Assembly: GCF_000737315.1 (NCBI RefSeq) | Contig: NZ_JMCB01000005.1 | Location: 434,001-498,000, forward strand | Direction of reading: 5' to 3' | Source: Hyalangium minutum | Lineage (GTDB): Bacteria; Myxococcota; Myxococcia; Myxococcales; Myxococcaceae | Length of the DNA stretch: 64,000 nucleotides | Translations under genes and position numbers: made by a program | Notes under the pieces: model-generated | What the model was told of the DNA's origin: nothing | Databases searched by the model: none | The model's input: only the letters and a program-made list of their open reading frames with translations | Shown: piece by piece, positions 21,344 through 55,222 of the stretch | Layout of the letters: every line of letters begins with the position of its first letter | How positions within the stretch are numbered: position 1 is the stretch's first letter

Positions 21344-23032
21344 TCACAGCGAGCCCACCAAGGCGCGCAGCTCCTCGTCTTCCGGGATGGGAGAGAGCGC
21401 GCCCCCCTGGAGCCCTCGGGAGCGTTGCTGCTCTCCGCCGAGCTGGAGTGACTCCGCCAGCAGCGAGCGCGCCTGATCGCGCTTGCCTTGCAGGAAGGCG
21501 ATGTAGCCCGCATTCCACAGCGCCGTGGGGCCGCGGGGCTGACGCTCCAGCGAGGCGGCGATCTTCGCGCTCGCCCGCTCCAGGAATGCCAGCGCCTGGT
21601 CCCGCTTCTGTACCCAGCACCGCTTCGCCTCGAAGATGAGCACCACGCCCGCGTCGTTGAGGGCCTCGGCGACGCGCTCGCGCACGGAGGCTTCGGGCGC
21701 TCCGTGGTACCGGCGCGCGACCTCCTCGTAGGCCGCCAGGGACTCTTCGAGCCGGTTCAGCTTCCAGAGGATCTCTCCCTTGCAGGCGAGCCCCCGCGCG
21801 ACCTCCTCGCGCACCTCCGGCTCGGTGTCGCCGCCATAGCGGCGGTCGAGCTCGTCGAAGGCGGCCACCTCCTCCTCGCGCCGATCCATCCGGCCGAGGA
21901 ACACGGCCTTGTAGGCCAGAGACTTGGCCATCCGGGCGCGGACCAGGACGGGCTCGCTCGGGCCGCCGTAGCGCGGAATCATCGCCTCGTAGAAGGCGAG
22001 CGCCTCGGGCGTCTGCTTCAGGTTCCCCAGGACGACGCCCTTATAGAGGATGGCCTCGGCCACCGCGTCCCGCAGCGCGGGCTCGGACGCCTTGTCGAAC
22101 CGGCGGAGCACCTCGTCGAAGACGGAGAGCATTTCCTCGGAGCGGTGCTGCTGCCGGAGCACCTCGGCCTTCGCCAGCAGCGCTTGGGCCACTTTCTCGC
22201 GCGCTGCATGCTCCCGGGACTCGCTGTGGTCGCGGAGCACCTGCTCAACCGAGGCCAGCTCCACCTCCGCGCTCTTGAGCATCTCCAGGGTCCGGCCCAG
22301 GCCCTCTTGCGCCGCGGTCACCATGTCCCGGAGCCGGGCATCGCTGGCGCCGCGGAAGTGGTCCATCAGCGTCTCGTAGCAGGAGAGTGCCTCACGCGGG
22401 CGGTTCGAGAGCCGCAGGAAGATGGCCTTGCTCAGGAGCGCCAGGGCTGCGTGGTAGCGCAGCACCACGTCGCTCGCACCGGCGAAGCGGCGGAACACCT
22501 CGTCATAGAGGGGCAGCCCCTCGTCGAGCCGGTTCAGCTCACCCAGCGCATCGGCCTTGGCCAGGAGCGCTCCGGCCATCACCTGCGCCAGGCCCGCCTC
22601 GTCCGCGCCGTCGTGCCGCTGGAGCACCTCGTCGCAGAGGGGCACGGCCGCCTCGGACTGGCCGAGGTTCATCAGCGCGTGGGCCTTGTGGATGAGCACC
22701 TTGGACGTCAGCTCTCGCAGCTTCGTATCGGTGGAAGCCGCGAAGAGCCGGAGCGCCTCGTTGCAGCTGGCCAGGGAGTCCTCGAAGCGCTCCAGCTGCC
22801 CGAGCGTGATGGCCTTGCCGATGAAGGCTCGGGCCACTTGGACTTGCACGGCCTGCGCGCTGGAGCTTCCAAACCGCTGGAACAGCTGGCCCATGAGGGC
22901 CAGGGCCTCCTCGTACTGACGCTGGTCCATGAGCGAGTGGGCGTTGTCGACGAGCGCCTGGGCGGCCTGCTCCGGGGCCTCCCCCATGCTCGCTTCGCCA
23001 GTCCTTCGGCTCACTTCGTTCTCGGCAGCCAT
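21344..23032 (-). CDS. Tetratricopeptide-repeat protein
   Basis: About ten helical repeats such as EVLRRF..ASEPALR..VA.A...KG..L. Confidence 0.8.
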   Translation of the reverse strand: MAAENEVSRRTGEASMGEAPEQAAQALVDNAHSLMDQRQYEEALALMGQLFQRFGSSSAQAVQVQVARAFIGKAITLGQLERFEDSLASCNEALRLFAASTDTKLRELTSKVLIHKAHALMNLGQSEAAVPLCDEVLQRHDGADEAGLAQVMAGALLAKADALGELNRLDEGLPLYDEVFRRFAGASDVVLRYHAALALLSKAIFLRLSNRPREALSCYETLMDHFRGASDARLRDMVTAAQEGLGRTLEMLKSAEVELASVEQVLRDHSESREHAAREKVAQALLAKAEVLRQQHRSEEMLSVFDEVLRRFDKASEPALRDAVAEAILYKGVVLGNLKQTPEALAFYEAMIPRYGGPSEPVLVRARMAKSLAYKAVFLGRMDRREEEVAAFDELDRRYGGDTEPEVREEVARGLACKGEILWKLNRLEESLAAYEEVARRYHGAPEASVRERVAEALNDAGVVLIFEAKRCWVQKRDQALAFLERASAKIAASLERQPRGPTALWNAGYIAFLQGKRDQARSLLAESLQLGGEQQRSRGLQGGALSPIPEDEELRALVGSL

Positions 23033-23188
23033 GGGCTCCTCGTCTTGCTGATGCCTTTGTCCTACTCCCCCTGGCCGTGTCCAGTGGAGCATAGGACGGA
23101 CTCAGCCGCTCATGCGACCCTTGTCGACTTGCCTTTCGGATGCGGAGCATCGAGAGTCCCGGCCCCGCGAGAATCCGCCCGAGCCTTG

Positions 23189-24268
23189 ATGCGACAGGAC
23201 TCCGACCCCTCACCTCCCTCGCGTGGCCGCGTGTGGAGTGTCACCGTTGCGTCACTGCTGGGAGCGGCGCTGGCGGAGGGGCTCCACCTGCCCGCGGGGG
23301 CGTTGCTGGGAGGGATGTTGGTGGCGCTCGTGGGCTCCGTGTTCGCTTCCGTGCGCGTGCCCATTCCGAGAGCCCTGCAAATGGCCGCTCCAGCGGTGCT
23401 GGGGGCCGCTCTGTGCGCGGCCTTCCGGCCCTCTGCCTGGGCCGCGCTCGCCGAGCACTGGCCCATTGCTCTCCTCAACGTGGTGGCGGTGGTGGCCATC
23501 GCACAGGGGGTGGCGCTCGTCTTTGCCCGGTTGAGTGGCCTGGACGTCCGGACCGTCACCCTGGGCCTCATGCCGGGAGGGGCGTCGGCGATGGTGGTGC
23601 TCAGCGAGGAGCTGGGCGCGGACTCACGCCTGGTGACGCTCTTCCAGTACGTGCGCCTGGGCGTCGTCATCCTCGTGGCGGGCGCGGTGGGCCGATGGGC
23701 CATTGATACGCCTCAGCTCCCGGTGGCCTCCGCCTCAGCGCTTCCCGGTGCGCCGCCTCCGGGGCTGGCGTGGGGCGTGACGCTGCTCGTGGCCGCCGTG
23801 GGGGGCTGGGGGGGCATGCGGCTGCGGCTGCCGGCGGGGGCTTTCCTCGGGCCGCTGCTGGTGGGGGTGCCGCTCACGGCGCTGGGCATTCCGGTGGGCG
23901 CGTTGCCGCCGGGACTGCTGGCGCTGTTGATGTGGGTGCTCGGCGTGCGCGTGGGCAGCCAGTTCGATGCCGAGGCCGTGTGGCGGCTGCGGCGCGTGGC
24001 GGTGGGAGCACTCGGGGGCGCGGTGGCGGTGGTGGGCGGCTGCGTGCTGCTGGCCTGGGCGTGGTCCTCGCTCGGAGGCGTGGACTTGCTCACCACCTAC
24101 TTCGCCACCTCACCTGGGGGAGCGGATACGATGCTGGCCATCGCGCTGGGGACGCATGCGAGCTTGCCGCTCGTACTCTCAGTCCAGGTGGGGCGACTAC
24201 TGCTCGTCTTCTTCGTGGTCCCCATCCTCTTTCGGCGCCTGTCTCCGGGCCGCCGCAATCCTTTGTGA
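23189..24268 (+). CDS. abrB: AbrB-family duplicated membrane protein
   Basis: Two repeats of LPAG.LLG.., MPGGASAM/SPGGADTM; start ATG 23189. Confidence 0.8.
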   Translation: MRQDSDPSPPSRGRVWSVTVASLLGAALAEGLHLPAGALLGGMLVALVGSVFASVRVPIPRALQMAAPAVLGAALCAAFRPSAWAALAEHWPIALLNVVAVVAIAQGVALVFARLSGLDVRTVTLGLMPGGASAMVVLSEELGADSRLVTLFQYVRLGVVILVAGAVGRWAIDTPQLPVASASALPGAPPPGLAWGVTLLVAAVGGWGGMRLRLPAGAFLGPLLVGVPLTALGIPVGALPPGLLALLMWVLGVRVGSQFDAEAVWRLRRVAVGALGGAVAVVGGCVLLAWAWSSLGGVDLLTTYFATSPGGADTMLAIALGTHASLPLVLSVQVGRLLLVFFVVPILFRRLSPGRRNPL

Positions 24269-24304: not shown

Positions 24305-26140
24305 ATGCACTGGCACTTGCTCTTGAAGAGCGCGGTCATGGGGGCCGTGCTGTTCGCGATGTCCGGACTCATCGGGGCCGACGCGCACGCCCAGCAATGC
24401 GGTCCCGAGACGCCTCCGCCGGTCAAGCCGCTCAATGACCAGATGAGCGACACGCGGCTTTTGCGGCGCATCGTGCTCGGGCTTACCGGGACAACGCCGG
24501 CCATCGAGCAGTATGAGGCGATGGCGGCTGCGGCCACACCTGAGGCCCGCGAAGTGCTCCTGCGCTCGGCGCTGGATGACGCGCTCGCCTCGCCGAAGTT
24601 CTACGAGCGGATGCTGCGCTTCGGGCATGAGTGGCTCGCGGTGGGCGCGTACACCACCGGCGCTGCCGGCGACGCCTACCAGGGCGACATGTCCGGCCAC
24701 CTCTTTGCCTGCCCCGCCAACAGCCTGCACCCGGGCGCGTACTACCACGTGAACGAGTTTGGGTCGGGGGACCCGGGCCTGCAGTGCAAGGACCAGAACG
24801 GAGCCGGCAATCCCGCTGTGCCCGAGGTGCACACGGTGGAGCCCTGGTGGGCGCCGGGAACGACGGTCGAGGTGCTCGGCAAGGCCGGCTCCTCCGTCAC
24901 CCAGGTCGTCGACGCCCAGGGGAAGACGCTCGACTGCGGCGTCGCCAGCGGCGGCTACTACGATCCCATGCTGTCCGCCGGGTGCGGCTGTGGACCGAAT
25001 CTGGTGTGGTGCGCACCGCTCGTCGGACTGAACACCAGCAGCAACTTCAATCTCGGCGTTCAACGGCGCCATCCGTACGAGGAGCCCGCGCGCCTCTTCG
25101 CGCACCTCGCGTGGCACGATCGGCCGCTGTCGGACCTCGTCATCGGCAACTACTCCGTGGGAACCAACTGGTTGCGCGCGTTGTACGTGCGCTTCGGTCG
25201 GCAGCAGGGCAGCACCGCGCTGGACGCGAACACGACCTGGTGGCGCCCCGCCGCGGACAACGCACCTCGCGATCCGCTGCACCCGGCGCCGGATGATCCG
25301 CAGGCGTGGCGCGAGTTCGTGGTCGAAGAGCTGGAGCCCTTCCACCTCGCGCTGACCACCGATCGAGCGCGCTCCGGCAGTCTCGAGCGCACCTACCGCT
25401 TCGATCCTCGCACTACGACCGAAGCCCCCCAGGGACTTCCCACCGCCGGGGTGCTCACCATGATGGGCGCGATGTCCTCGTTCCCGCGCGAGCGCGTCCG
25501 AGCCGCGCGCTTCCTGGAGATGTTCGCCTGTCAGAGCTTCTCGCCGCCCCCCTCGGACGTGCACTTCCCTCCATACGAGAGCGATCCTGCGACCGGCGGA
25601 ACGTGCCAGCACTGCCACAAGACGCTCGATCCCGCGGCGATCTCCTTCAAGCGGTGGGACTTCAGTCCGTTCCAGAGCTACTACGTCCCGTGGCCCTTCA
25701 TCCCAGGCGTGGGCCGTCATCGCGTCACGAAAGAGTGGCTGTCCGGGCAGTACCCGCACACGGGCACCTCGCCGGGATACCGCTGGAGAAACGCGTTCCT
25801 TCCCAACACCCTGTTGACCCCGGTCACCCCCGAGCAGATCAAGGCCAATCCGGAAGCGGTGCTGCTCGACACGATGCCCGAGTCATACACGCTGCTCGGT
25901 GAGCACGGCGACGGCACGATGGGCCCGCTCGGGTTCGGAAAGCTCCTCGTCCGCTCCGGTGAGTTCGACCGCTGTGCCTCGCGCAGGCTCTACGCGATGT
26001 TCATCGGCCGCGAGCTGAATCCGGCCACCGAGAAGGGCTTCATCGACAAGCTCGCGAGGGAGTTCGTCGCACGCGACCGCAAGCTCCGTCCCTTCATCCG
26101 TTACCTCTTCGAACAGTCCGAGCTGCGGAGGGGCCTGTGA
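24305..26140 (+). CDS. Exported DUF1585/DUF1588-like protein with CxxCH
   Basis: Signal peptide; RLLRRI.L.LTG..P, AGVLT, CQHCH..LDP, GRE-type C-terminus. Confidence 0.6.
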   Translation: MHWHLLLKSAVMGAVLFAMSGLIGADAHAQQCGPETPPPVKPLNDQMSDTRLLRRIVLGLTGTTPAIEQYEAMAAAATPEAREVLLRSALDDALASPKFYERMLRFGHEWLAVGAYTTGAAGDAYQGDMSGHLFACPANSLHPGAYYHVNEFGSGDPGLQCKDQNGAGNPAVPEVHTVEPWWAPGTTVEVLGKAGSSVTQVVDAQGKTLDCGVASGGYYDPMLSAGCGCGPNLVWCAPLVGLNTSSNFNLGVQRRHPYEEPARLFAHLAWHDRPLSDLVIGNYSVGTNWLRALYVRFGRQQGSTALDANTTWWRPAADNAPRDPLHPAPDDPQAWREFVVEELEPFHLALTTDRARSGSLERTYRFDPRTTTEAPQGLPTAGVLTMMGAMSSFPRERVRAARFLEMFACQSFSPPPSDVHFPPYESDPATGGTCQHCHKTLDPAAISFKRWDFSPFQSYYVPWPFIPGVGRHRVTKEWLSGQYPHTGTSPGYRWRNAFLPNTLLTPVTPEQIKANPEAVLLDTMPESYTLLGEHGDGTMGPLGFGKLLVRSGEFDRCASRRLYAMFIGRELNPATEKGFIDKLAREFVARDRKLRPFIRYLFEQSELRRGL

Positions 26141-27195
26141 TGAGCCAGTTGCGTTCGATGCTGGGAGCCGCAGTGCTGGCCTCTCTCACACTCACCTTGG
26201 GGGCCTGCTTCGGCTCGGCCAGCACCACGGACACGAGAACCCCCAATGCCGAGGAGCCAGACGAGGGGGAGAGCTGCGCGGCCTTGAACAAGAACGATGA
26301 GATCCGGCTCGCGCTCGCGCCCGCATGCCAGGGCTGTCACCTCACCGGTAACAAGCCGTTCTTCGGCTCGCTGTCCGCGTTCGAGAGTGGGCTCGTGTAC
26401 AACGAGAGGTACGTCAAGCGCGGGGACCCCGAGAACAGCTTGCTGGTCCAGCTGCTCAAGGGCGTCGCACCTGGAAGCTATCCCCAGATGCCGCTTGGGC
26501 AGACCTACAGCGAGCTCGTCACCAGCGGCCGTGTCACGCTGACCCTCGAGCAGGTGGAGGCCTGGATTCGCGATCTGCCTGCTCCGCCCGCGCAGCTGGA
26601 GACTCCGTCTCCGGAAGAGTTCCACGTCCGCCGGCTGTCCGCCGACGAGATGGTGGTGAGCTTGATGGAGCAGCTCGGGCTCACGCTCGAGGACTTCGTC
26701 AGCACCAGCGATCCCAACTGGAGGAACAAGGCGTACGTGGTGAATGGCGGCAAGCTCTTCGTATGGCCCGGGGATTGGGCGCCCGGCATCTCGACCGAGT
26801 ATGTCTCCGACTCCCGCAGCGTCGAGCGGTACGAGGCGCTGGGAGGCGGCAACTCGCTCCTGTACCGCAAGCGGGACGTGAGCTTCGGTCCCTCCGCCGC
26901 GCAGACGCTGGTCCAGATGTCGCAAGCCTGGTGCGCGCGCGCGGTGGACAAGAGAAACAACACGGCGGTGTTGCGCTACGTGACGCTCTCCGACAGCTCC
27001 TCCCGCAGCCCGGACGCGGTGCGGAGAAACCTGAGCACGCTCTACCTGCGCATGCTCGGACAGCCGCCTTCGGAGGCGGAAGCGAGCGCGTTGTACGAGC
27101 AGGTCTATCTGCCGCTCGAGGCGCAGAGCACGCGCTTGGCCTGGATTGGCGTCTGCGCGGCGCTCATCCGTCACCCGCTGTGGATCACCTACTGA
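26137..27195 (+). CDS. Lipoprotein with c-type heme motif
   Basis: Lipobox LGAC; CQGCH; YPQMP; C-terminal LGQPPSEAE..WIGVCAALIRHP. Confidence 0.65.
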   Translation: MMSQLRSMLGAAVLASLTLTLGACFGSASTTDTRTPNAEEPDEGESCAALNKNDEIRLALAPACQGCHLTGNKPFFGSLSAFESGLVYNERYVKRGDPENSLLVQLLKGVAPGSYPQMPLGQTYSELVTSGRVTLTLEQVEAWIRDLPAPPAQLETPSPEEFHVRRLSADEMVVSLMEQLGLTLEDFVSTSDPNWRNKAYVVNGGKLFVWPGDWAPGISTEYVSDSRSVERYEALGGGNSLLYRKRDVSFGPSAAQTLVQMSQAWCARAVDKRNNTAVLRYVTLSDSSSRSPDAVRRNLSTLYLRMLGQPPSEAEASALYEQVYLPLEAQSTRLAWIGVCAALIRHPLWITY

Positions 27196-27207
27196 GCCGA
27201 GGACATT

Positions 27208-28788
27208 ATGAGGAACACCTCTCGTCGCACGCTGCTCAAGTGGGCCCTCGGAGCGGGACAGCTCGCGCTCCTCGAACGCGCGGGGCTCCTCGGCTCGAGC
27301 CCTGCTTACGCCGCGGGCATGGACGTCCCCTCACGGCTCGCAGTGCTCTACATCCCGGGTGGCTACCGGCCGGCGTACTACTTCACCCCGATGGAGGACG
27401 CCGACATTCCGCTCTGCGTCCCGGCCCCCTCCAACTACAGCGGCGAGCCCGTCTTCTTCGACGCGAGCAAGGTGGTGGACCTCGCGGCCGCGAACGGACC
27501 CTACAAGCCGCTGCGAACCTGGCAGTCGTGGAACCCCGCCGACCCCGCCGCGCGAGGCAGCTTCAGCCCGCTCATGTATGGCTACACGCACTTCGCGCTG
27601 CATGAGCAGCTGAGCGTCCTGCACGGCATCGACCAGGGCACCAACGACCACGCGAGTGCGTTCATCTCCTCCATGTGCGGTGTCGCCGGTGCGGACTACC
27701 GGGCGCCGGCCGTTCACTCGGTCATCGCCAATCACCTGTTCGAGAGGTACCGCGAGAGCAGACCGCTGCCGTTCGTGGTTGTCGCCGGTGAGCGCGGCAC
27801 GCCGCTGGGAATGGGGCTGCCCTCACACGCCTCGCCCGTTCGCGTGCCGTCCATCGAGTCGCTCAAGCCGCAGCTCTCCGCCAAGCCCGCGGATAACCCC
27901 TGGTGGACGGGGCTTGATGCGCGCACCGAAGCTCCCGAGCTGGACGCACGCGGGCAGCCCACCGGTAGCACCCTGAAGACGACCACGGTGGAGCGCTTCT
28001 CGCTCTCGCGCGCTCAGCCGTTGATGGACCGATCGACGGCGAAGGTGGACAACTACCTCGAAGGTCTGCATGGCTCGCTGGCGTCGGTCTCGCGCGTGCT
28101 CGCGACGGATGTCGTGTCCATGCTGGAGCGCACCAAAGGCATCGACACGCTGACGGCGAACCGCCCCGCGTACCTGTCGAGCTACCTGTCGAACCAATCG
28201 TTCACGTACACCTTCGGTCTCGCGAACTTCCACCTCACCGGGCTCGACCCGCGGATGGATCTCGCGCTGCGCCTGCTCAAGTCGGACCTCTGCACCTCGG
28301 TGCACGTCTCGTTGCAGCTCGACTTCGACACCCACAACGGCCTGGGCCATGGCTACAGCTGCGCACACGGCCGCGGGCTGATGGACTGCGTCGCGCGCTT
28401 CCTGGGCGAGCTCAAGGCTGCTCCGGCTCCCGGTAAGCCGGGCAAGACACTGCTCGATGACACGCTCGTGCTGGTGATGAGCGAGTTCGGCCGCAGCTGG
28501 GCCTCGCGCGGAAGCGACGGCACCTACAGCCTGCCGGATGATCATCACCCCTACACCTCGGTCTGCTTCGCGGGCGGAAACGTAGCGGGGAACCGGCAGG
28601 TGGGCTCGTACACCCCGCGCGGGCTCGGCGTCCCCGTGGACCTCATCGAGGAGACCGGTCAGCCCTCGAGGCGCGTGCCCAGATCCGCGGACGTCGTGAC
28701 CACCGCGCTGCGGATCATGGGCATGGAAGCGCACGACTTCTTCATCCCCGGTGGCTACGGAGAGGTCGTGGGGCTTCGGAAGGCGTGA
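27208..28788 (+). CDS. DUF1501-family protein with Tat signal
   Basis: SRRTLLK; FDTHNG; LLDDTLVLVMSEFGRS; DHHP. Confidence 0.8.
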   Translation: MRNTSRRTLLKWALGAGQLALLERAGLLGSSPAYAAGMDVPSRLAVLYIPGGYRPAYYFTPMEDADIPLCVPAPSNYSGEPVFFDASKVVDLAAANGPYKPLRTWQSWNPADPAARGSFSPLMYGYTHFALHEQLSVLHGIDQGTNDHASAFISSMCGVAGADYRAPAVHSVIANHLFERYRESRPLPFVVVAGERGTPLGMGLPSHASPVRVPSIESLKPQLSAKPADNPWWTGLDARTEAPELDARGQPTGSTLKTTTVERFSLSRAQPLMDRSTAKVDNYLEGLHGSLASVSRVLATDVVSMLERTKGIDTLTANRPAYLSSYLSNQSFTYTFGLANFHLTGLDPRMDLALRLLKSDLCTSVHVSLQLDFDTHNGLGHGYSCAHGRGLMDCVARFLGELKAAPAPGKPGKTLLDDTLVLVMSEFGRSWASRGSDGTYSLPDDHHPYTSVCFAGGNVAGNRQVGSYTPRGLGVPVDLIEETGQPSRRVPRSADVVTTALRIMGMEAHDFFIPGGYGEVVGLRKA

Positions 28789-28803: not shown

Positions 28804-29748
28804 CTACCCTGGCTTTGAACGCAGGGCCTGGTAGGCGCGCTTCCCCGCCATCACGGCCAGCAGGATGAGTGCCCCGGCAACGATTCCGGACAACGCATCC
28901 ATGATGGTCGGCACCACCGCTTGCAGGACTCCTCCCACCCCCGGCACGTTCCCCGCGCCATGGGCGATCCCCTCGATGAGGTGATGCAGGGGAGGGATGC
29001 CGTGGGTGAGGATGCCGCCGCCGACCATGAACATGGCGGCCGTGCCGGCGATGGACAGCCCCTTCATCAGGTACGGAGAGGCCACCAGGAGCCCGCGGCC
29101 CAGCGTGCGCTGGAATGAGCCCTTCTTCTGGGTGAGATAGAGCCCCGCATCGTCGAGTTTGACGATGCCAGCGACCAGCCCATAGACGCCGACCGTCATG
29201 ATGATGGCGATGCCGATCAGGACGGCGACTCGCTGCCCGAAGGTCGCGTTGACGAGCGTGCCCAGCGAGATGACGACGATCTCCGCCGAGAGGATGAAGT
29301 CCGTACGGATCGCGCCTTGGATCTTGGCCTTCTCGAAGGCAACGAGGTCCACCGCAGGGTCGGCGACGGCCTTGACGAGCTCGCCGTGGTGGGCTTCGTC
29401 CTCGGCCTTGTTGTGCAAGAACTTGTGGGCCAGTTTTTCAAAGCCTTCGAAGCAGAGGAAGGCACCGCCCACCATCAACAGCGGGATGATCGCCCAGGGA
29501 ATAAAGGTGCTGATGGCCAGGGCGGCGGGCACCAGAATGGCCTTGTTGACCAGGGAGCCCTTCGCGACCGCGAAGACGACAGGCAGCTCGCGATCGACGG
29601 TGACGCCGGCCACCTGCTGAGCATTGAGCGCGAGATCGTCACCGAGGACTCCCGCGGTCTTTTGGGTCGCGACCTTGGTCATCGCCGCGACGTCGTCCAG
29701 GAGGCTGGCGATGTCATCAATCAGGGTCAGGAGGTTGCTACCGGCCAA
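28804..29748 (-). CDS. yedI: DUF808 (YedI-like) inner-membrane protein
   Basis: MAGSNLLTLIDDIA, AGVLGDDLALNAQQV, GAIRTDFILSAEI. Confidence 0.9.
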   Translation of the reverse strand: MAGSNLLTLIDDIASLLDDVAAMTKVATQKTAGVLGDDLALNAQQVAGVTVDRELPVVFAVAKGSLVNKAILVPAALAISTFIPWAIIPLLMVGGAFLCFEGFEKLAHKFLHNKAEDEAHHGELVKAVADPAVDLVAFEKAKIQGAIRTDFILSAEIVVISLGTLVNATFGQRVAVLIGIAIIMTVGVYGLVAGIVKLDDAGLYLTQKKGSFQRTLGRGLLVASPYLMKGLSIAGTAAMFMVGGGILTHGIPPLHHLIEGIAHGAGNVPGVGGVLQAVVPTIMDALSGIVAGALILLAVMAGKRAYQALRSKPG

Positions 29749-29793: not shown

Positions 29794-31560
29794 CTACTTC
29801 AAAGCTGGCGGCAGTGCCTGTGACAGCGCCTGCTCCAGCTCGCGCCCGTGCGTGGTGTAGAGCTCCCTCCACTCAAACCCCGTGGGCAGCGTTCCTCCCT
29901 GGCCGACGAAGAGGTACACGAACAGATCCAGCAGGAGCCTTTGCGAGGACGTTCCACAGTAGCGCCCCAGGGGGTGGGGCTCTCGCCCCTCCGCTGGGAG
30001 AATCTCTCGCGCCACGCGCTCCAGCTCATCGGCGGTGTGGCGTACAGCCGAGGGAGCCGCCAGCTTGCGGCGCTCGGTAATTTCCTCGGCGAAGGGCGCG
30101 GGCAGCACGCGGCGAGCCACTTCGCGCAGCAACACCTTCCGCGTCCTCCCCCGGACGCGCTGCTCCCAGGGGAGCGAGAGCGCCAGGTCCCGGATCCTTC
30201 GATCCAGGTAGGGCACCCGCACCTCCAGGCCGCTCGCCATGGAGCCTCCATCCCAGACGCGCAGGTGCGCGTCCGTGAGCTGCCCCTCCAAGAAGAAGCG
30301 GTAGAAAGCCTCACGGGCCGCGGCTTCGTCTGGGAGGGCCACCGCCCGCAGAGCCGCCTTGGTGGAGGCGCACTCCTCCACGGGCACCGTGCCCGTCCGA
30401 ATCATCCGGTTGTAGCTCTCCACGCAGGACTTCAGCCATGGCGCGGAGCTCGCGTGGAGGACGTAGCCCGCGAAGAGCTCATCGGCCCCATCCCCGCAGA
30501 GCACCGCCTTGACGTGGTGACGGATGGCAGGAGCCGCCGTCTCCACAATGGTGGGCTCCGAGGGCCCCTCGATCGCGACGAGCGCACGCGGCAGGGACTC
30601 CAGCAGCTCGGCGGGGCGGAAGATGTACTCGTGGTGCCGCGTCCCCAGCGCCTCGGCGAGCCTCCGGCTCATGGCAAGGTCCGCCGACTCCGGATCATCC
30701 GCGAGCGAGAAGGTATGCAGCGCCGGCGAGCCCTCACGCGCCAGCAACGCGGCCAGCAGGGAGCTGTCCACGCCCCCTGAGAGAAAGAGCCCCACCGGGT
30801 GATCCGCCGCTCGCTGCCACCGTACCGAGCTCGTGAGCAGCTCGAGCAGCAACTCGGCCAGCTCCTCCTCACGCGTGGGCAGCGTGAGCGGGCGCGGCGC
30901 GCTGTGGCGGCCGGGGCGAAGCTCCAGGAGCCCATCCGGGCGGCGAGAGATCTCCAGCGTGCCACCGGGCGGCACTTGGCGAATGGCCCGGAAGAGCGTG
31001 CGCTCACCGAGCAGAAAGCGAAAGGTGGCCCACTCGAAGAGCGCCGTGCGATCGAGCTCCCGCGGCAGCGAGGGGTCCACCAGCAGCGCCTTCAGCTCCG
31101 AGGCAAACAGGAGCCGGCGGCCCCCGTCCACGAGCGCGTAGTACAGCGGCTTGATGCCGAAGGCATCCCTCGCCAGGGTGAGCCGCTCGCCGTCCGAGAG
31201 GGCGAAGGCGAACATGCCCTCCATCTCCTCCAGCCAGGCCATGCCCCGGCGCTCCAGGCCGCGCAGCACCACCTCGGTGTCGCTGCGTGTCCTCAAGGGG
31301 GGGCCCTCTCGCTCGAGCTCCCGGCGCAGCTCCACCGTGTTGTAGAGCTCGCCGTTGTAGGCGAGCGTCAACCCGGCCGGGCCGGACATGGGCTGCGCTC
31401 CCCCCTCCATGTCCACGAGGCTCAGGCGCGTGCTGCCCAGGCCCGCGTGGCCTACCACCGCCGTTCCCCATCCGTCCGGGCCCCGGTGCTCGAGCCGGCG
31501 TGTCATGCGCTCGAGCAACGCTCGATCCGGCTCACCAAAAATCCCTGCGATGCCGCACAC
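29794..31560 (-). CDS. Asparagine synthetase (AsnB)-like Gln amidotransferase, putative RiPP tailoring enzyme
   Basis: MCGIAG (catalytic Cys), HRGPDG, LSGGVDSS, GDGADELFAGY, EVRVPYLD. Confidence 0.88.
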   Translation of the reverse strand: MCGIAGIFGEPDRALLERMTRRLEHRGPDGWGTAVVGHAGLGSTRLSLVDMEGGAQPMSGPAGLTLAYNGELYNTVELRRELEREGPPLRTRSDTEVVLRGLERRGMAWLEEMEGMFAFALSDGERLTLARDAFGIKPLYYALVDGGRRLLFASELKALLVDPSLPRELDRTALFEWATFRFLLGERTLFRAIRQVPPGGTLEISRRPDGLLELRPGRHSAPRPLTLPTREEELAELLLELLTSSVRWQRAADHPVGLFLSGGVDSSLLAALLAREGSPALHTFSLADDPESADLAMSRRLAEALGTRHHEYIFRPAELLESLPRALVAIEGPSEPTIVETAAPAIRHHVKAVLCGDGADELFAGYVLHASSAPWLKSCVESYNRMIRTGTVPVEECASTKAALRAVALPDEAAAREAFYRFFLEGQLTDAHLRVWDGGSMASGLEVRVPYLDRRIRDLALSLPWEQRVRGRTRKVLLREVARRVLPAPFAEEITERRKLAAPSAVRHTADELERVAREILPAEGREPHPLGRYCGTSSQRLLLDLFVYLFVGQGGTLPTGFEWRELYTTHGRELEQALSQALPPALK

Positions 31561-31590: not shown

Positions 31591-33561
31591 TCACGCCTGG
31601 GCGGCGGGAGCGGCCTTGGGCTCGGCGAACACCACGAGCCCCTCGCCATGGAATCGCTGGAGCGCCTCCAGCACCGCCTGCTCCACCTTCTGGGCGGGCT
31701 GTTCGCTCCGGCGCCGTTGGCCCTCGAGCAGCTGCCCCACGGTGCGCTCGCCGTCGCACTGCTGGAGCAGCTCCGAAGTCCACGCGTTCACCCGGAAGTG
31801 GTGGCCGTAGAGGTTGGGCCGCTTGTGGAAGAGGACCGTGGCCTCGCCCCCCGTGCCCTGTCCACCCGAGAGCATCCCCGGCGGCAGGGAGTGGAAGCGC
31901 TCCACCCGGACCCACTGGCTGCGCAGCGGCACCAGCGCGCGCAGCGCCTCGGGCGAGCCGTTTCCTCGGAGGGCCGACCACATGTCAGGCCGCTCGAAGG
32001 CAGGCTGCGCCTCCTCCTCAGGGGTGAAGTGCCCCATCCACACCAGCAGCCCGGTATAGCGCGCTGCCTCCGCCACGGCCGGCTCCACCGCTCCTCCCTG
32101 GCCCGAGCCCACCCACTGGCAGAAGGCTGCCGCGTCCGCGAAGAACGTGGGAGGCACCTCCGGGTGCGCCGCCTGGAAGGCCTGGAGCATGGGCTCGGCA
32201 CGCGCCCCGAGCACCTCCACCAGCCCGGGCGCCGTGCGGCGCAGCGCTTCGCCCCGGTTCTCGGGCAGCCCCCGCTCGGCCGGGGACAGCCGCCCTGGCT
32301 GCCCTCGGTGCTTGGCGATGACGTCTTCGAAGAGCCGCGTGAACTCCCCCGCGACATCTCTTCGGGGCAGTCCCTGCACCAGCTCCAGTCCGCGCCGGCC
32401 GATCTCCCGAGCGCCCTCCGGATCCTCGATGGCCTGGCGCAGCGCCCGCGCCAGCTCGCTGTGCACGCGGGGATCCGGCACCAGCAGCACGTTCTTCCCG
32501 GGGGCCAGGTGTTCGCGGAAGGGCTGCTTGGCGGCAATCTCCCCGGAGAGCACCAGGCAGGTGCCGCAGGCGAGCACCTCCCGAGGCACCGTGGGCGCGT
32601 GGAAGGTGATGGGGAAGTCCCGCTCCAGGAAGCACACCGCGCGGCACGCCCGGATGAAGCGCGCCACCTTCCAGTGCGCTACGAAGGGCAGTACCCACGT
32701 CACCTCCGCGAGGCCCTGTTCCTCCACCGCCTTGTGCAGGGGCGCCACCCGCTTGCCCCGCGTGAGCGCCACGAGGTTGAAGCGCAGCCCCTCCTTGCGC
32801 AGCAGGGCCAGCGCGCTCAGCAAGTCATACGTGCCCTTGGTGACTCCCACCTTGCCGTAGATGCCAATCACCGGCAGCGAGGGATCCAACAGGCGCGGGT
32901 TCCGCACCAGCCCCGGGTGTTCCCGGTTCAGCTCCTCGAGGACGCCGTTGATGTCCAGCGGCTCCACCGTGGGGCTGAAGCACTCGCGGATCAGATCGGG
33001 CGGCGGCCCCCGGTAGATGTTGTCGGGGTGGACCCCCATGCCGAGAAACAGCAGGGGATTGCCTGCGCACACGCCGTTCGCGCGGCGGATGATCTCCCGG
33101 TACGTGGTGCCCAGGCCGGGCCGGGTCATCAGCCTTCCGAGATCGCTGCCGGCGTTGCGCACCAGGTAAGGCACTCCGGTCCAGTGCGAGGCCATGTTCG
33201 CGGCGACGCCGTACGGCTCGAAGTAGTAGCTGAAGATGACCTCGCAGCGGTGGCGGCGGACGACGTCGGTGGCGAGGCCCGCGAGCTTGCTGACGTAGGG
33301 GTTCGCCTGCGGCACGTGCAGGAAAGCGGAGGAGCTGCGCTCGGAGAGGTGCAGTCGCACCCGCCCCGCGCCGAAGGTGGGCTCCAGCCACGAGCGATCA
33401 TCGGCCGTGAGCATGAGCCGGTAGTCGTCCTCCACCTCGTCCGCGTTGGTGACGACGTGGACTTCATGGCCGGCCTCGGCCAGCGCGCGGCACATCCAGT
33501 AGGACTGGGCGCTCACGCCACCTTGAATGGGGGGGTATTTGATGAGGGCGCAGATACGCAC
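31591..33561 (-). CDS. GT4-type glycosyltransferase fused to C-terminal MNIO-partner/RRE-like module
   Basis: KYPPIQGGVS, GHEVHVVT, EVLACGTCLV; C-terminus aligns by eye with the MNIO C-terminus. Confidence 0.8.
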   Translation of the reverse strand: MRICALIKYPPIQGGVSAQSYWMCRALAEAGHEVHVVTNADEVEDDYRLMLTADDRSWLEPTFGAGRVRLHLSERSSSAFLHVPQANPYVSKLAGLATDVVRRHRCEVIFSYYFEPYGVAANMASHWTGVPYLVRNAGSDLGRLMTRPGLGTTYREIIRRANGVCAGNPLLFLGMGVHPDNIYRGPPPDLIRECFSPTVEPLDINGVLEELNREHPGLVRNPRLLDPSLPVIGIYGKVGVTKGTYDLLSALALLRKEGLRFNLVALTRGKRVAPLHKAVEEQGLAEVTWVLPFVAHWKVARFIRACRAVCFLERDFPITFHAPTVPREVLACGTCLVLSGEIAAKQPFREHLAPGKNVLLVPDPRVHSELARALRQAIEDPEGAREIGRRGLELVQGLPRRDVAGEFTRLFEDVIAKHRGQPGRLSPAERGLPENRGEALRRTAPGLVEVLGARAEPMLQAFQAAHPEVPPTFFADAAAFCQWVGSGQGGAVEPAVAEAARYTGLLVWMGHFTPEEEAQPAFERPDMWSALRGNGSPEALRALVPLRSQWVRVERFHSLPPGMLSGGQGTGGEATVLFHKRPNLYGHHFRVNAWTSELLQQCDGERTVGQLLEGQRRRSEQPAQKVEQAVLEALQRFHGEGLVVFAEPKAAPAAQA

Positions 33562-33595: not shown

Positions 33596-35356
33596 TCAGT
33601 TCGCGGGCACCGCGAGGGTGAGGGCGTTGAGCTCCATCAGGCGGCGGACCACCTCGGCGCAGCTCCGGACTTCCTGGGCGCTCGCCTCGCCCGCCGCGCC
33701 GGGTGAGAGCCGTGCGGCGATCTCCGCCGTGGTGCGGCTCCCGTCACACAGCGCGAGCAGGGCGCTCGTCCGCTCGTTGATGGCCAGGTGGCGCACGTTG
33801 CGGAAGCCGGGCGCCTTGCTGAAGAGCACGAGCGAGGGCTTGAGCGGAACCTCCTCCGTGGCCTCGCCCGCGTTGAGGCGCCGCACGAGCTCCACCACAT
33901 CGCAGCCGAACCGCTCCACGCGCACGTGGGGCCCGGAGAGGGGACGCGCGGCCGCCAGCTCTTCGACCCCTGGGGCAGCGCGGCTCTCGAAGGCGCGGCG
34001 GAACTCCAGGGCCGTCTCCACCGGAGCCACCGTCGAGCACAGCTCGAGCTGGACACGCTCGAATCGGAGGATGTCCTCCAGCGGGAAGCGCAGCTCGGGC
34101 CGCTCCTCCAACACGCGGGAGAGCAACTGGAGAAACCAGAAGCCGTCTCGCACGGTGCGGTTGACGAACTCGGGGGAATGGCGAGGGGCGTGCTCCTCGG
34201 TGAAGCGATGCGAGACGTCGTGCCAGAGCTTGTGCAGCTGCAGCCATCGGCAGCTCGCCGGAGCGGCCTTGGTGATCAGCGAGAGCCGCTTGCTGGAGAG
34301 ATCATGCGCGAAGGTGTTCAGGTGCCCTGCCCCCACCGCGAGCAGCGCCTCCACCTGCTCTGGCCCCAAGCCCAGCTCCTCTCCCACGGCAGGGGGCGCG
34401 GCGAAGAACCGCTTGCGCAGTCCGTCCTCCACCAGCAGCCGGGCCAGCGCCGTCTGGAAGACGTGCGCGTCCGTGGGCAGCGGCGTGGAGGGGCGCTCGG
34501 GCCAGGCCGGGAGCGTGCTCCGGTGGGGCGGCCGGGGAGCCGCGCGGTGCGCACGGTGGAGAATCTCCTTGGCCCGATCGATGTCCTCGAGCATCTCCTG
34601 GAACTCCTCGGGGAAGTTCTGGTCCCGCTCGATCAGGACGGCACGGACCTGGCTGCGCTCGGCCACATACTCCAGCAGCTTCCACACCTCCGGGTGCGAG
34701 TCCACGCGCTGGCTGTGGCTGTCAATCCACTGGCCACCCCGCCGCTCGCCTCCCGCCAGGTGCACCTGGACGACCCGCTCCAGCGGCAGCGCGTCCAGGA
34801 AGGCGTACGGATCGTACCGGTGGTTCTGCGAGTTGATGAAGACGTTGGCCAGATCCAGCAGCAGGCCGCAGTCCGCCTCCGTCAGCACCCGGGTGATGAA
34901 CTCCGCCTCGCCCAGCGGGCTGGGGATGGCGAACGCATAGGTGATGTTCTCCAGCAGGAAGGGCACACCGAGGATCTCCTGGACCCGGCGCGCATTGGCG
35001 GCGCATCTGCGGATCGCGGCCTCGGTGAACGGCAGCGGGGTGAGCTGGCCCAGCTCCACGTCCCCCGCCCTCGTCATGCACAGGTGGTCGCTGGAGAAGG
35101 GCGCTCGGACGGCCCGCACCAGCTCGGCCACCTCCTGGCAATACGCCTCATCCAGCGGCGCATCCGTGCCGACGGACGTCTCCAGTGCGTGGGGGATGAG
35201 CGGATGACGCTCCAGCAACGGCAGCGCTCGCTCCATGCTCTCGGGCACGGAGCGCACGTATCTGTCGGCGATCAGCTCGAACCAGTCGATGCGATCGCCG
35301 TGCTTCAGCTGCTGCTCGCGCAGCTCGGGCCGGTAGCCAATACCGACCCCGAGCAT
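33596..35356 (-). CDS. DUF692 multinuclear non-heme iron oxidase (MNIO) fused to partner/RRE-like module
   Basis: GVGIGYR, WFELIADRY, PHAL, SDHLC, LLENI, LLLDLANVFIN, QVHLAGG, IDSH, IERD; ~300-aa C-terminal extension; alternative start GTG 35419. Confidence 0.92.
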   Translation of the reverse strand: MLGVGIGYRPELREQQLKHGDRIDWFELIADRYVRSVPESMERALPLLERHPLIPHALETSVGTDAPLDEAYCQEVAELVRAVRAPFSSDHLCMTRAGDVELGQLTPLPFTEAAIRRCAANARRVQEILGVPFLLENITYAFAIPSPLGEAEFITRVLTEADCGLLLDLANVFINSQNHRYDPYAFLDALPLERVVQVHLAGGERRGGQWIDSHSQRVDSHPEVWKLLEYVAERSQVRAVLIERDQNFPEEFQEMLEDIDRAKEILHRAHRAAPRPPHRSTLPAWPERPSTPLPTDAHVFQTALARLLVEDGLRKRFFAAPPAVGEELGLGPEQVEALLAVGAGHLNTFAHDLSSKRLSLITKAAPASCRWLQLHKLWHDVSHRFTEEHAPRHSPEFVNRTVRDGFWFLQLLSRVLEERPELRFPLEDILRFERVQLELCSTVAPVETALEFRRAFESRAAPGVEELAAARPLSGPHVRVERFGCDVVELVRRLNAGEATEEVPLKPSLVLFSKAPGFRNVRHLAINERTSALLALCDGSRTTAEIAARLSPGAAGEASAQEVRSCAEVVRRLMELNALTLAVPAN

Positions 35357-35471: not shown

Positions 35472-35666
35472 TCAGGCGCTCTGGCTGACACAGCCACAGA
35501 GGCAGCCGGTGCCGCACACACAGCTGATGCACATGCTGCCCGCGTCCGTGAACGAATACGCGGGACCACAGTCCAGCATCTCCAGCTTGAACTCTTCGGT
35601 CTCCAGCGGCTTGGCGTCGGGGGCAATGAACTTCGCGTTCTGGAGGGGCGCGCTGGGGTTTTCCAT
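35472..35666 (-). CDS. Cys-rich RiPP precursor peptide (64 aa)
   Basis: GAGGA RBS; MENPSAPLQNAKFIAPDAKPLETEEFKLEMLDCGPAYSFTDAGSMCISCVCGTGCLCGCVSQSA; directly upstream of the MNIO. Confidence 0.88.
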   Translation of the reverse strand: MENPSAPLQNAKFIAPDAKPLETEEFKLEMLDCGPAYSFTDAGSMCISCVCGTGCLCGCVSQSA

Positions 35667-35736
35667 TTTTTCCTCAGAAGTCCTAGGGGGAAGGACTGAG
35701 ATTTTTACTCTGCGTGGACTTCCTGTCAATGCGCTT

Positions 35737-36921
35737 TCACCCAGGTTTCTCCTCCGGTGCCCCCATCCGGGCGCCCGTGAGGCAAGCCACGGCCGTCCCC
35801 ACGCCATCGCGAGGCGTCAGGACGGCGGCGAGCGCACGGGCCTGGTGCCGCAGGCGCTCGTCCGTCAGCGCCTGTTGTATCGAGGCGATCAGCTGAGGGG
35901 CCTTCACGCCTCGTGCAAAGAAGGGGGCCGGAGCGATGCCCAGGCGGTAGGCGCGCTCGGCCCAGAAAGGCTGATCATACGCATGGGGCACGAGGACCTG
36001 GGGGACGCCCGCACGCGCGGCCGCCGCGAAGGTCCCCGCCCCGCCATGGTGCACCACCGCCGCGACGCGAGCGAAGAGCGGGCGATGCGCGGCATGGCCA
36101 ATGCGAAGGAGGGGGCCCTCCACCTGAGGACGAGCGGGAGCGTTCCGCCCCGCATGGAAGACAGCGCGGCACCCCACGGCCTCCACCACCTCGCGCAGGA
36201 GCTGCTCGTTGAGCGCTGGCTCGCTCCCGGCGAGGCTGCCAAAGCCGATGTAGATCGGGGGCTCGCCGGCTGCCAGGAACGCCTCCAGCTCGTCCTCGAG
36301 TGGGCGGGGATCCTCGAGCAGCAGTGCTCCCGTAGGAGGCGCCCACACCTGCACGCCCCCCAGCGAGCCCAGGAGCTCCTCATCCGCGGCGAGCAGGACC
36401 CGCTCCGGAGGAAAGGCGTAGGCGAGCAGATCCTCCACGGGCGGTAGCCCACGCCGGGCGTGGAAGTCCCGCACCGTCTGGAGCAAGACCGGGGGCACGA
36501 AGATGGAGGTGCGCCCGCGGGGCATGAAGAGCCCCGGCGCGTAGACGACCGCCAGGTAGGGCGCGCCCACCGCCGCCGCCGCGGAACGAACCGCCATCGC
36601 CATTCCCGCGCCGAGCACGAAATCCACCCCCTCCGCGAGCGCGGGCAGACACTCGAGCTGAGCCCGACACTCCTGATCGAGGAAGGCCTCGATGGTGCCC
36701 GGAGGCAGGTAGCCCGGGGCGCCCCCGGCCCGCCCGCGAAGGAACTCCTCCACATCCTGTCCCATCGGCACGAAGGGCACCTGAAAGGCGGCGGCATCGG
36801 AGGCGTAGAGCGGCCGCGCCGCGAGGATGGCCTCGTGCCCCGCCGAGCGCAGGCCCAGGGCGAGGGCCAGCATGGGCTGGAAATCTCCACGAGAGCCAGG
36901 AGCTGCGAGCAGGAACTTCAC
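35737..36921 (-). CDS. GT1-family glycosyltransferase (GtfB/sterol glycosyltransferase-like)
   Basis: GGAGG RBS then GTG 36921; GSRGDFQPM, IYIGFGS, VVHHGGAGT, YDQPFWA. Confidence 0.88.
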   Translation of the reverse strand: MKFLLAAPGSRGDFQPMLALALGLRSAGHEAILAARPLYASDAAAFQVPFVPMGQDVEEFLRGRAGGAPGYLPPGTIEAFLDQECRAQLECLPALAEGVDFVLGAGMAMAVRSAAAAVGAPYLAVVYAPGLFMPRGRTSIFVPPVLLQTVRDFHARRGLPPVEDLLAYAFPPERVLLAADEELLGSLGGVQVWAPPTGALLLEDPRPLEDELEAFLAAGEPPIYIGFGSLAGSEPALNEQLLREVVEAVGCRAVFHAGRNAPARPQVEGPLLRIGHAAHRPLFARVAAVVHHGGAGTFAAAARAGVPQVLVPHAYDQPFWAERAYRLGIAPAPFFARGVKAPQLIASIQQALTDERLRHQARALAAVLTPRDGVGTAVACLTGARMGAPEEKPG

Positions 36922-36974
36922 GGCGTCCTCCCTGGCCGGCTGGACACGGGGCGCATCCGCGACGGCCTTTTGCG

Positions 36975-37028
36975 GTGACATGTCACACGCGCAGGTTGCC
37001 ATGTCACCCGTCCAGGATGGCATGTCAG
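36975..37028. promoter_or_regulatory. Three CATGTCA direct repeats with 21-bp period; the first lies in a GTGACATGTCAC palindrome
   Basis: Copies at 36979, 37000 and 37021, upstream of the GT1 start. Confidence 0.65.
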
Positions 37029-37203
37029 CCGTGGGATATCGTGGACGCTTTGAGCGCACAGCGGCGTGGCGCAGGGCGTGGGAGGCTACGGCAGGCAGCC
37101 CACGCCACGGTCATACGTGTGCTTCTGGCAGGACACTCCGATGTCCGTATGGAGGGCAGAAAAGGAGCGGAAAATTCGGGTCAAACACTTCCTCGCGAGT
37201 TGC

Positions 37204-47980: not shown

Positions 47981-48104
47981 ATCAAGGCGGAAGCAAAACC
48001 CCAAGCAGGTCGCGCTGTTACCGGCTAACGCCTTGATCTCTCATCGGTTCGTTCTGCCGTCCCATCCCGTTTCGTTCCGTCTCGTCCCGTTCTCACCCCC
48101 GCTG

Positions 48105-48127
48105 GAGGGGCACACTGGGGGCACATG
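48105..48127 (+). repeat. Putative integrase arm-binding tandem GGGCACA site (left)
   Basis: gaggggcacactgggggcacatg; 22/23 identical to 62816-62838. Confidence 0.65.
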
Positions 48128-48351
48128 CGGGTCCCTCTCCGCTCACCGAGTGCTGTCGAGAGAGCATCTGGGATACCCACCAACTGAGGCCTCCCTCTAG
48201 CCGTGGTAGCATTGGGTACATGGCTTCACTCCTCATTGAAGAGCGATGGCGCGAGCTACTCCGGGAAATCCGTCTCGGGGCCCCTCCCCACGATATGAGG
48301 CTCTACGTGAAGCCCGGGCATGGGTGCGCGGACGAGGTCGTTCGTGACTTC

Positions 48352-48455
48352 CTTTCGGACGATCTAGGCGAGCGAGGCGGCGCAATAGGCGGCGTTTCTC
48401 GGGCGCATCATTCAAATTGGGCGGCACTGTGTTTGCCCCAGGAGCGCTCTGCTCA
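48352..48455 (-). pseudogene. Remnant of XRE regulator C-terminus
   Basis: EQSAPGANTVPPNLNDAPEKRRLLRRLARLD vs EQSAPGANTVPPGLSDTPEKRRLLRLLARLD at 55574-55674. Confidence 0.7.
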
Positions 48456-48519
48456 GAGCCTGCCTCAAGAAACCAGCTACGCAAGCCCACCTTCAACGTC
48501 ACTGCTGAGTCGCCAGCAC

Positions 48520-49955: not shown

Positions 49956-50097
49956 ATTGGCCTCCAGTGAATCTATCCGTGTGGCTGCTTTCCGGCGGCT
50001 CGGAGGCGCGGTGGTACATGGCAACGAAGTCAAGCATGGGCGAACCCTACGCCCCCTGCGCGGCGGTTCGTGCTGGTGAAGCGAGAGGAGTGGGAAC

Positions 50098-53533: not shown

Positions 53534-53624
53534 GGCAAGACTCCTTGACGAGCATCCATCGCGTGCTGCAGTCGCATGCAATGAAGATGCTCGGACCACG
53601 ACATAGCCTTGGCGCACGACGACA

Positions 53625-53813
53625 TCATCCCCGGCCTCCGCACGGTTTCAGGCTTACGCCGTCCGACAACCTCAACTCGCGCAGGGCCATCTTCGTTTCC
53701 CCGGCCTTCGACATCGTCGTGCCGCCGGGAGGCTCGACGTCTACCGTCGCGGTGAGCTTCAGGCCGCCGATGGTCGCGAAGCGCGAAAGGACCTTCTTGT
53801 AGAATTTCATCCA
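53625..53813 (-). pseudogene. C-terminal remnant of a DUF499-like AAA protein
   Basis: WMKFYKKVLSRFATIGGLKLTATVDVEPPGG..ETKMALREL resembles the DUF499 C-terminus as recalled; cut at the IS91 remnant. Confidence 0.5.
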
Positions 53814-53816
53814 CTT

Positions 53817-55164: not shown

Positions 55165-55222
55165 TGGCACAGGACTTCCTCAAGCTGTATGGCTCGATCA
55201 AGCTCACTATGTCTGCGGCGGA

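Follow-up and report, generated by a model that had tools for sequence, protein, structure and literature searches.

A GT4-type glycosyltransferase fused to a paralogue of MNIO partner proteins in a putative peptide-modification cluster of Hyalangium minutum

The subject of this analysis is a predicted glycosyltransferase of family GT4, encoded at positions 31591-33561 of a 64,000-nucleotide stretch of DNA from Hyalangium minutum (Myxococcota; contig NZ_JMCB01000005.1, positions 434,001 to 498,000 of the forward strand), which is hereafter called the window. The enzyme carries a long C-terminal extension. The original prediction, made from the letters of the sequence, held that this extension is the same peptide-recognition module as the tail of a neighbouring MNIO (DUF692) protein, and that the glycosyltransferase acts, guided by a leader peptide, on the precursor of a peptide that is made by the ribosome and modified after translation (RiPP). 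Profile comparisons and structural models presented below indicate that this extension of 240 residues is an ancient paralogue of the proteins that partner MNIO enzymes.

The window has a G+C content of about 68%, and real genes were picked by their GC content at third codon positions. Five of them form a co-directional block on the minus strand, given here from upstream to downstream:

35737-37059, minus strand: GT1-type glycosyltransferase, 440 amino acids
35472-35666, minus strand: precursor, a small Cys-rich open reading frame (ORF), 64 amino acids
33596-35419, minus strand: MNIO (DUF692) protein, 607 amino acids
31591-33561, minus strand: ORF of the GT4 fusion, 656 amino acids plus stop
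29794-31560, minus strand: asparagine-synthetase-like amidotransferase, 588 amino acids

The gaps that separate the last three genes measure 30-34 nt, with 34 nt between the end of the upstream MNIO gene and the start of the GT4 fusion and 30 nt between the latter and the asparagine-synthetase-like gene. The same set of five genes is also present in Corallococcus exercitus.

The GT4 fusion and its C-terminal module

The GT4 fusion is an exact ORF of 656 codons with a GTG start and a third-position GC content of 0.90, and its N-terminus, MRICALIKYPPIQGG, aligns with residue 1 of full-length homologues. Full-length relatives with 40-75% identity at 93-100% coverage are found in Corallococcus, Stigmatella, Sorangium, the Acidobacteriota, Nonomuraea (Actinomycetota) and others; some of them bear the NCBI label “PqqD family peptide modification chaperone”. 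The protein can be divided into the following parts, of which the third, a RiPP recognition element (RRE), is contained in the second:

32317-33561, minus strand: catalytic region with a predicted GT-B fold, retaining type (amino acids 1-415; from Pfam, Foldseek and conserved residues)
31594-32316, minus strand: C-terminal tail, apparent paralogue of MNIO partners, a helical subdomain and then the RRE (amino acids 416-656; from hidden Markov model (HMM) searches, hhalign, AlphaFold2 (AF2) and Foldseek)
31624-31932, minus strand: PqqD-like RRE winged-helix subdomain (approximately amino acids 544-646), modelled with three strands, three helices and one terminal strand

Pfam matches to GT4 families cover amino acids 14-396 and include Glycos_transf_1 (PF00534, 43.4 bits against a gathering cut-off of 26.4) and Glyco_trans_4_4 (PF13579, 37.5 bits against 29.7), and the same scan of the ORF returned no match to the GT2 family PF00535. 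In the AF2 model of the full-length fusion (pLDDT 93.7, pTM 0.92), the catalytic region adopts the two-Rossmann GT-B fold. Foldseek ranks as its best PDB matches MshA (3c4q), BshA (3mbo/6d9t), GlgM and PimB', each at probability 1.00, along with sucrose-phosphate synthase; its sequence identity to the solved GT4 enzymes is low, at 12-19%. The residues K237, K242, G243, E313 and E328 are invariant among 66 homologues and line up with the corresponding positions of PDB entry 5i45, namely its basic residue, KG motif and pair of glutamates, with a spacer of 14 residues between E313 and E328 compared with the canonical 7 of the E-x7-E-type motif. Because the catalytic-type residues are invariant and the closest structures are those of retaining GT4 enzymes, we expect the domain to be an active glycosyltransferase of the retaining type. 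The likeness to MshA and BshA might be read as pointing to UDP-GlcNAc as the sugar donor; this reading was not adopted, since both proteins are generic top matches for GT4 queries and share 15-18% identity with the domain.

The MNIO protein, with which the tail was compared, consists of two parts:

34559-35350, minus strand: MNIO domain (amino acids 24-287; PF05114, E 2.7e-78, 263 bits)
33599-34522, minus strand: partner-like tail (approximately amino acids 300-607)

The strings quoted in the original prediction occur in both proteins, and in a pairwise BLASTP comparison amino acids 538-611 of the GT4 fusion align with amino acids 486-567 of the MNIO protein at 37% identity over 82 columns (E 1e-6). 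To place this likeness in a wider context, we used 79 related loci collected from many phyla, in which an MNIO gene was counted if it lay within the 10-kb flanks and a tail if it had at least 150 amino acids. An HMM of 283 positions, whose 55 input sequences were partner proteins of MNIO enzymes or tails fused to them, all free of a GT4 domain, matches the GT4 tail of the window with E 2e-27 over profile positions 54-282, and also 69 of 73 GT4 tails from the related loci. Furthermore, hhalign aligns the GT4-tail alignment with the partner alignment at a probability of 99.9% (E 9e-36) over 251 columns. It follows from the HMM and hhalign results that the likeness of the two tails is real and extends over both the helical part and the winged helix, so that the predicted alignment of the tails and the predicted correspondence of the helical segments preceding it are both borne out.

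The GT4 tail and the partner of the same locus resemble each other no more closely than randomly paired ones do (19.7% versus 19.0%), so the duplication appears to be old; a recent duplication of the tail within a genome is argued against. When GT4 tails and partners were placed together in a neighbour-joining tree, it was only partly resolved; 48 of the 67 GT4 tails formed one clade, with two partners inside it. The most conserved residues of the GT4 tails sit in the RRE part, in the motifs F-x-K-x-P-N-L and N-x-x-T-x-x-L-L-x-x-C-D-G-x-R-T. A search of 1.84 billion representative proteins with the tail profile yielded 1311 matches at E<=1e-3, of which 304 reach E<=1e-10. GT4 fusions and discrete partners 260-310 amino acids long make up most of the best 150, alongside shorter fragments, and all ten of the mid-length matches that were checked contain Glycos_transf_1.

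The identity of the shared module was approached by profile and by structure. PqqD (PF05402) is matched by amino acids 582-643 of the GT4 fusion with 24.6 bits in the whole protein and 26.7 bits in the tail alone (cut-off 23.4). Pfam on the MNIO tail alone gave no matches even at E<=10, and the profile of the MNIO-tail family matches PqqD structures 5vrd and 5sxy with E 4e-5. Both tail profiles thus match PqqD structures in the PDB (5sxy, 5vrd, 3g2b), that of the GT4 tail with E 3e-7 for 5sxy, and the GT4-tail profile also matches the lasso-peptide RRE TbiB1 (5v1u). The AF2 model of the GT4 tail (amino acids 416-656, from a 39-sequence alignment; pLDDT 94.2, pTM 0.88) comprises a helical subdomain and, after it, three strands and three helices, which DSSP assigns in the RRE part as strands 551-559, 572-579 and 587-590 and helices 593-601, 608-618 and 623-639. 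The first three Foldseek matches of this model in the PDB are TglI (8hci_A and 8hi7_A) and then NGO1945 (3dee), over 225-229 aligned columns; chain A of 8hci is the partner TglI, because chain D of this entry is the DUF692 protein. Leader-bound TbiB1 (5v1v/5v1u) ranks lower, with TM(target) 0.75-0.79.

NGO1945 and TglI are the reference structures that define MNIO partner proteins (PMC12452194). Judging from these profile and model comparisons, the module shared by the two tails amounts to approximately 80% of a TglI/NGO1945-like MNIO partner, and the “tail” of the MNIO protein in the window is, by sequence, a fused partner that most relatives encode as a separate gene. The suggestion that the two proteins share an RRE of the PqqD type therefore holds for the winged helix, for which Pfam, PDB profiles, AF2 and the Foldseek match to TbiB1 agree, and for the RRE character of both tails by profile (PqqD for both, TbiB1 for the GT4 tail), while the module as a whole is larger than an RRE. 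The GT4 tail has no DUF2063 match in Pfam even at E<=10 and so fits the “PME-type 2” partner group (PMC12452194), whose members likewise lack such a match. Like TglI and NGO1945, the tail has a predicted two-part fold of a helical domain and an RRE-type winged helix, and it is homologous at the profile level to the partners encoded beside the MNIO enzymes of this family. In contrast to those partners, which are free-standing proteins encoded behind MNIO, it is attached C-terminally to a glycosyltransferase, is usually without the first 55-70 partner residues and in most clusters, including that of the window, is a second copy of the module. The last ~100 residues form the same three-strand, three-helix winged helix as PqqD and TbiB1 and superpose on leader-bound TbiB1 (5v1v, TM(target) 0.78); in the fusion, however, the predicted RRE is embedded in a larger partner-type module that is joined to the glycosyltransferase. 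Since the shared module is nearly a whole partner protein, the tail may also, or instead, dock to the MNIO enzyme.

Several minor observations concern this module. Part of the GT4 tail (111-127 columns, E ~1e-3) resembles in Foldseek two carbamoyltransferases, GdmN and NovN; RRE fusions to carbamoyltransferases have been reported (PMC12710340), so these enzymes may contain a related sub-fold. The first 55-70 residues of the partner module, which are missing from most GT4 tails, weakly resemble leader peptides of the nitrile hydratase type (NF038399, E 5e-4; PDB 6lk7, E 0.045); in the window this segment lies at 34292-34456 on the minus strand, within the MNIO protein (amino acids 322-376, partner profile positions 4-66). 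A comparison of the partner of the Plesiocystis locus (L005) with WP_006975235, the PME-type 2 example in PMC12452194, did not establish that they are the same protein, the possible ORF lengths being 308 or 290 amino acids as opposed to the published 276.

Precursors, neighbouring enzymes and related loci

The putative precursor of 64 amino acids, MENPSAPLQNAKFIAPDAKPLETEEFKLEMLDCGPAYSFTDAGSMCISCVCGTGCLCGCVSQSA, is preceded by a GAGGA ribosome-binding site 5 nt ahead of its ATG (35667-35680, minus strand). A candidate promoter lies between it and the stop codon of the GT1 gene:

35701-35729, minus strand: sigma-70-like promoter candidate, TTGACA-17-AAAAAT (consensus match only)

The site is unique within 28.5-37.5 kb of the window, where 0.3 occurrences are expected from shuffled sequences, and suggests that the precursor and the downstream enzymes may be under a promoter of their own. 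Homologous precursors adjoin the MNIO gene in six of the related loci (L001-L006), with the leader EEFKLEMLDxGPxY and the core CxSCxCG[ST]GCxCG; the orthologous precursor gene of C. exercitus is annotated and encodes 57 amino acids. When all 10,432 small ORFs of the family loci were considered, 66 were found to combine an F-x-hydrophobic-acidic-x-hydrophobic motif with a Cys-rich end, and 61 of these 66, distributed over 48 loci, lie within 3.5 kb of a GT4 or MNIO gene.

A tailed GT4 is encoded in 72 of the 79 related loci, and its GT4 domain is 40-50% identical across phyla. From the Myxococcota to the Actinomycetota, 65 of these 72 loci contain an MNIO gene within 10 kb, and several of the seven that do not are situated on contigs of just 4-7 kb. 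The remaining seven loci comprise five with a tail-less GT4, one with a split tail (L064) and one without a complete ORF (L029), and five of the seven have no MNIO gene nearby. This synteny across phyla supports the proposed tie of the glycosyltransferase to a RiPP pathway. The arrangement of the partner module in the 65 loci with MNIO is as follows:

55 loci: discrete partner, and a GT4 tail without the first 55-70 partner positions
4 loci: partner fused to MNIO, as in the window
1 locus (L058): discrete partner, and a GT4 tail spanning the whole partner profile
4 loci (L037, L061, L067, L076): GT4 tail spanning the whole partner profile and being the sole partner-like ORF even at E<=10
1 locus: partner not clear, GT4 tail not full-length

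In the four loci of the fourth group, the GT4 and MNIO genes abut or overlap (L037, 807-3814; L061, 8673-12118; L067, 8922-12064; L076, 9929-13019), and here the GT4 fusion may be the sole partner of the MNIO enzyme.

A locus of the Thermoanaerobaculia (L007 / L081, 3752-13664) contains 12 tandem precursor genes, whose leaders end in a double-glycine of the LDDVSGG type, together with one partner, one MNIO gene and two GT4-partner fusions; the asparagine synthetase is absent from this locus, and nothing further in it is obviously biosynthetic. This minimal gene set suggests that the peptide class has the MNIO enzyme and the GT4 fusion as its core enzymes.

Among the other enzymes of the window, the MNIO protein remains below the NCBIfam equivalog cut-offs for HvfB (205.7 bits, cut-off 360) and BufB (204.3 bits, cut-off 310), and its tail matches the NCBIfam models of the MNIO partner proteins ApyI (E 1.2e-8) and HvfC (E 2.8e-3). 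The asparagine-synthetase-like protein combines PF00733 with GATase_7, scores 365 bits with TIGR01536 (cut-off 267) and keeps the N-terminal Cys2; genes of this kind co-occur with the GT4 gene in 25 of the 79 loci. Related asparagine-synthetase-like enzymes amidate or cyclise carboxylates in other RiPPs (PMC13060819), and by analogy the enzyme of the window is probably also a tailoring enzyme responsible for amidation, or for lactam formation or cyclisation, of a carboxylate. The GT1 protein, encoded directly upstream of the precursor, resembles macrolide and rifamycin glycosyltransferases (PF06722 and PF03033; NCBIfam Rgt with E 5e-42, under the cut-off), and no RRE was detected in it (35737-37059). 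Conservation of the GT1 gene is confined to the C. exercitus cluster, so two different sugars may be attached to the peptide, or GT1 may have another substrate.

Proposed function and its alternatives

We consider it likely that the GT4 fusion is a RiPP tailoring enzyme that carries out leader-guided, retaining glycosylation of the precursor encoded at 35472-35666, although both leader binding and sugar transfer to the peptide are inferred. In the proposed scheme, the RRE of the tail would bind the leader of the precursor, probably through the F-x-hydrophobic-acidic-x-hydrophobic stretch (EEFKLEML in the window), and this docking would place the core, rich in Cys, Gly, Ser and Thr, in the cleft of the GT-B domain, which would then move a sugar from a nucleotide sugar onto a core residue. 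The MNIO enzyme, with its own fused copy of the module, would read the same leader and oxidatively modify core cysteines, after which the asparagine-synthetase-like enzyme would amidate or cyclise a carboxylate.

Several facts weigh against this proposal or against parts of it. GT1 could instead be the enzyme that decorates the peptide. As to the acceptor, Ser or Thr is present in every core at positions that are just partly conserved, and Cys is the sole positionally constant core residue, so conservation of Ser or Thr does not serve to name the acceptor. Partners of the TglI/NGO1945 kind also bind the MNIO enzyme itself, and in four loci (L037, L061, L067 and L076) the GT4 tail is the sole partner-like module, so that the main role of the tail could be the formation of a complex with MNIO and not the delivery of substrate. 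In such a case, the tail would mainly dock to the MNIO enzyme or activate it in a multi-enzyme complex resembling TglI-TglH or MbnC-MbnB, and the leader would perhaps be read by MNIO's own partner. This principal alternative, which is compatible with glycosylation, draws on the match of the tail to nearly the whole partner protein, beyond the RRE, on TglI of the TglHI holoenzyme as its best structural match, and on the abutting or overlapping genes of those four loci, where the full-profile tail is accompanied by no other partner at E<=10. We regard it as rather unlikely, given that the MNIO enzyme comes with a partner of its own, fused or discrete, both in the window and in 59 of the 65 loci, that most GT4 tails are without the first 55-70 partner residues, and that the best conserved residues of the tail (F-x-K-x-P-N-L and N-x-x-T-x-x-L-L-x-x-C-D-G-x-R-T) are in the RRE part.

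Two further explanations would dispense with glycosylation of the peptide. The chaperone label given by NCBI to some members, and a similarity to solved GT4 enzymes of just 12-19%, would agree with a GT4 domain that has become a non-catalytic scaffold, i.e. a pseudoenzyme, in a fusion that serves only as a second leader-binding chaperone; however, the residues of nucleotide-sugar-binding and catalytic type (K237, K242/G243, E313 and E328) are invariant in 66 diverse homologues, the GT-B model is confident (pLDDT 93.7), and the domain is kept at 40-50% identity across phyla, all of which makes a dead enzyme very improbable. Hardly credible is the notion of an ordinary envelope or polysaccharide GT4 enzyme whose tail would be a winged-helix regulatory domain outside any peptide pathway, next to MNIO by coincidence. 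Many database records do read “glycosyltransferase involved in cell wall biosynthesis”, but the MNIO neighbourhood recurs in 65 of the 72 tailed loci from the Myxococcota to the Actinomycetota, the tail is apparently a specific paralogue of the MNIO partner, and the gaps to the flanking genes, 30-34 nt, are those of an operon.

Leader-guided glycosylation by the GT4 fusion can be compared with several known systems. The glycocin S/O-glycosyltransferases SunS, ThuS, GccA and ThgS belong to CAZy family GT2, have the GT-A fold and are inverting enzymes. The GT4 fusion is expected, like them, to glycosylate a Cys/Ser/Thr-rich ribosomal precursor ahead of leader removal. It differs from them in its GT4/GT-B architecture of the retaining type, with MshA/BshA-like structure, in the fused recognition module and in its MNIO pathway, and the precursors of the GT4 loci have CxxC-type cores as opposed to the two-helix, disulfide-stapled fold of glycocins. 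The assignment to GT4, distinct from the GT2 family of the glycocin enzymes, was part of the original prediction and stands: the Pfam GT4 matches are above their cut-offs, and the absence of a PF00535 match together with the GT-B fold places the fusion outside that family. The closest solved structures, those of the UDP-GlcNAc-dependent retaining GT4 enzymes MshA and BshA (E ~1e-17, TM(target) 0.67-0.73), have the positions of the nucleotide-sugar-binding motifs in common with the GT4 domain at 15-18% identity; these enzymes, however, act on small-molecule acceptors (inositol phosphate and malate) and are devoid of a C-terminal peptide-binding module.

It had also been proposed that a GT4-RRE protein would be new chemistry, which overstates the case. 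The general idea of an RRE-guided glycosyltransferase is not new, because RRE-glycosyltransferase fusions have been noted in genome mining with RRE-Finder (PMC7470986), as have RRE fusions to the GT2 family PF00535 (PMC12710340), all of them uncharacterised. These share with the present protein the general scheme of a putative RiPP cluster in which a leader-binding RRE is joined to a sugar transferase. They belong to PF00535 or to a family that is not given, whereas the protein described here combines GT4 with a whole module of the MNIO-partner type. No characterised GT4-RRE protein or MNIO-associated glycosyltransferase was found in the full-text literature, the coverage of which leaves out most subscription journals, and glycosyltransferases are not mentioned in the MNIO landscape paper; the fusion of GT4 to an MNIO-partner module thus appears to be uncharacterised so far.

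RiPP engineering rests on tailoring enzymes that are guided by a leader, and a retaining glycosyltransferase of the GT-B fold that brings its own recognition module would, if confirmed, offer a new portable means of peptide glycosylation, with the opposite stereochemistry to the GT2 glycocin enzymes. The loci show the MNIO partner module to be a reusable adaptor that occurs free, fused to MNIO or fused to a second enzyme. The family is open to testing: its members number hundreds, in phyla of soil and sea, and its minimal gene sets are small, consisting of precursors, a partner, an MNIO gene and a GT4 fusion. Known MNIO products bind metals or act as antimetabolites, and glycosylated Cys-rich MNIO peptides would be a new type of product. 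More speculatively, GT4-partner fusions might mark a large class of RiPPs characterized by a motif-bearing leader, Cys-rich cores of the CxxC type and MNIO and retaining GT4 as core enzymes, with an alpha-linked sugar, possibly on a Cys sulfur or on an MNIO-made heterocycle, and with a single GT4-fused partner serving both enzymes in some lineages. We offer this extension tentatively; were it correct, an alpha-linked sugar on a Cys sulfur or on an MNIO heterocycle would be without precedent among ribosomal peptides.

Other features of the window

The asparagine-synthetase-like gene is followed closely downstream, on its own strand, by a gene for a DUF808 membrane protein (28804-29748, minus strand; E 9e-112). 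Because tblastn gave no match to it in any of the 79 related loci, this gene probably does not belong to the peptide cluster. Beyond it, three co-directional genes on the plus strand (24305-28788) contain weak domains of the Planctomycete type, the first being PSCyt2/PSD2/DUF1800-like, the second without an assignment and the third of the DUF1501 family; these genes do not appear to be connected with the peptide cluster. Within 21344-24268, two long ORFs on opposite strands overlap, namely a TPR-repeat protein (21344-23092, minus strand) and an ORF of 926 amino acids (21488-24268, plus strand), the C-terminal part of which is a membrane domain of the AbrB family; the true start of this plus-strand gene is probably well downstream. 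Finally, the G+C content drops to 0.59-0.63 at 48000-56000 of the window, compared with about 0.68 elsewhere, and this segment may be foreign or another kind of sequence.

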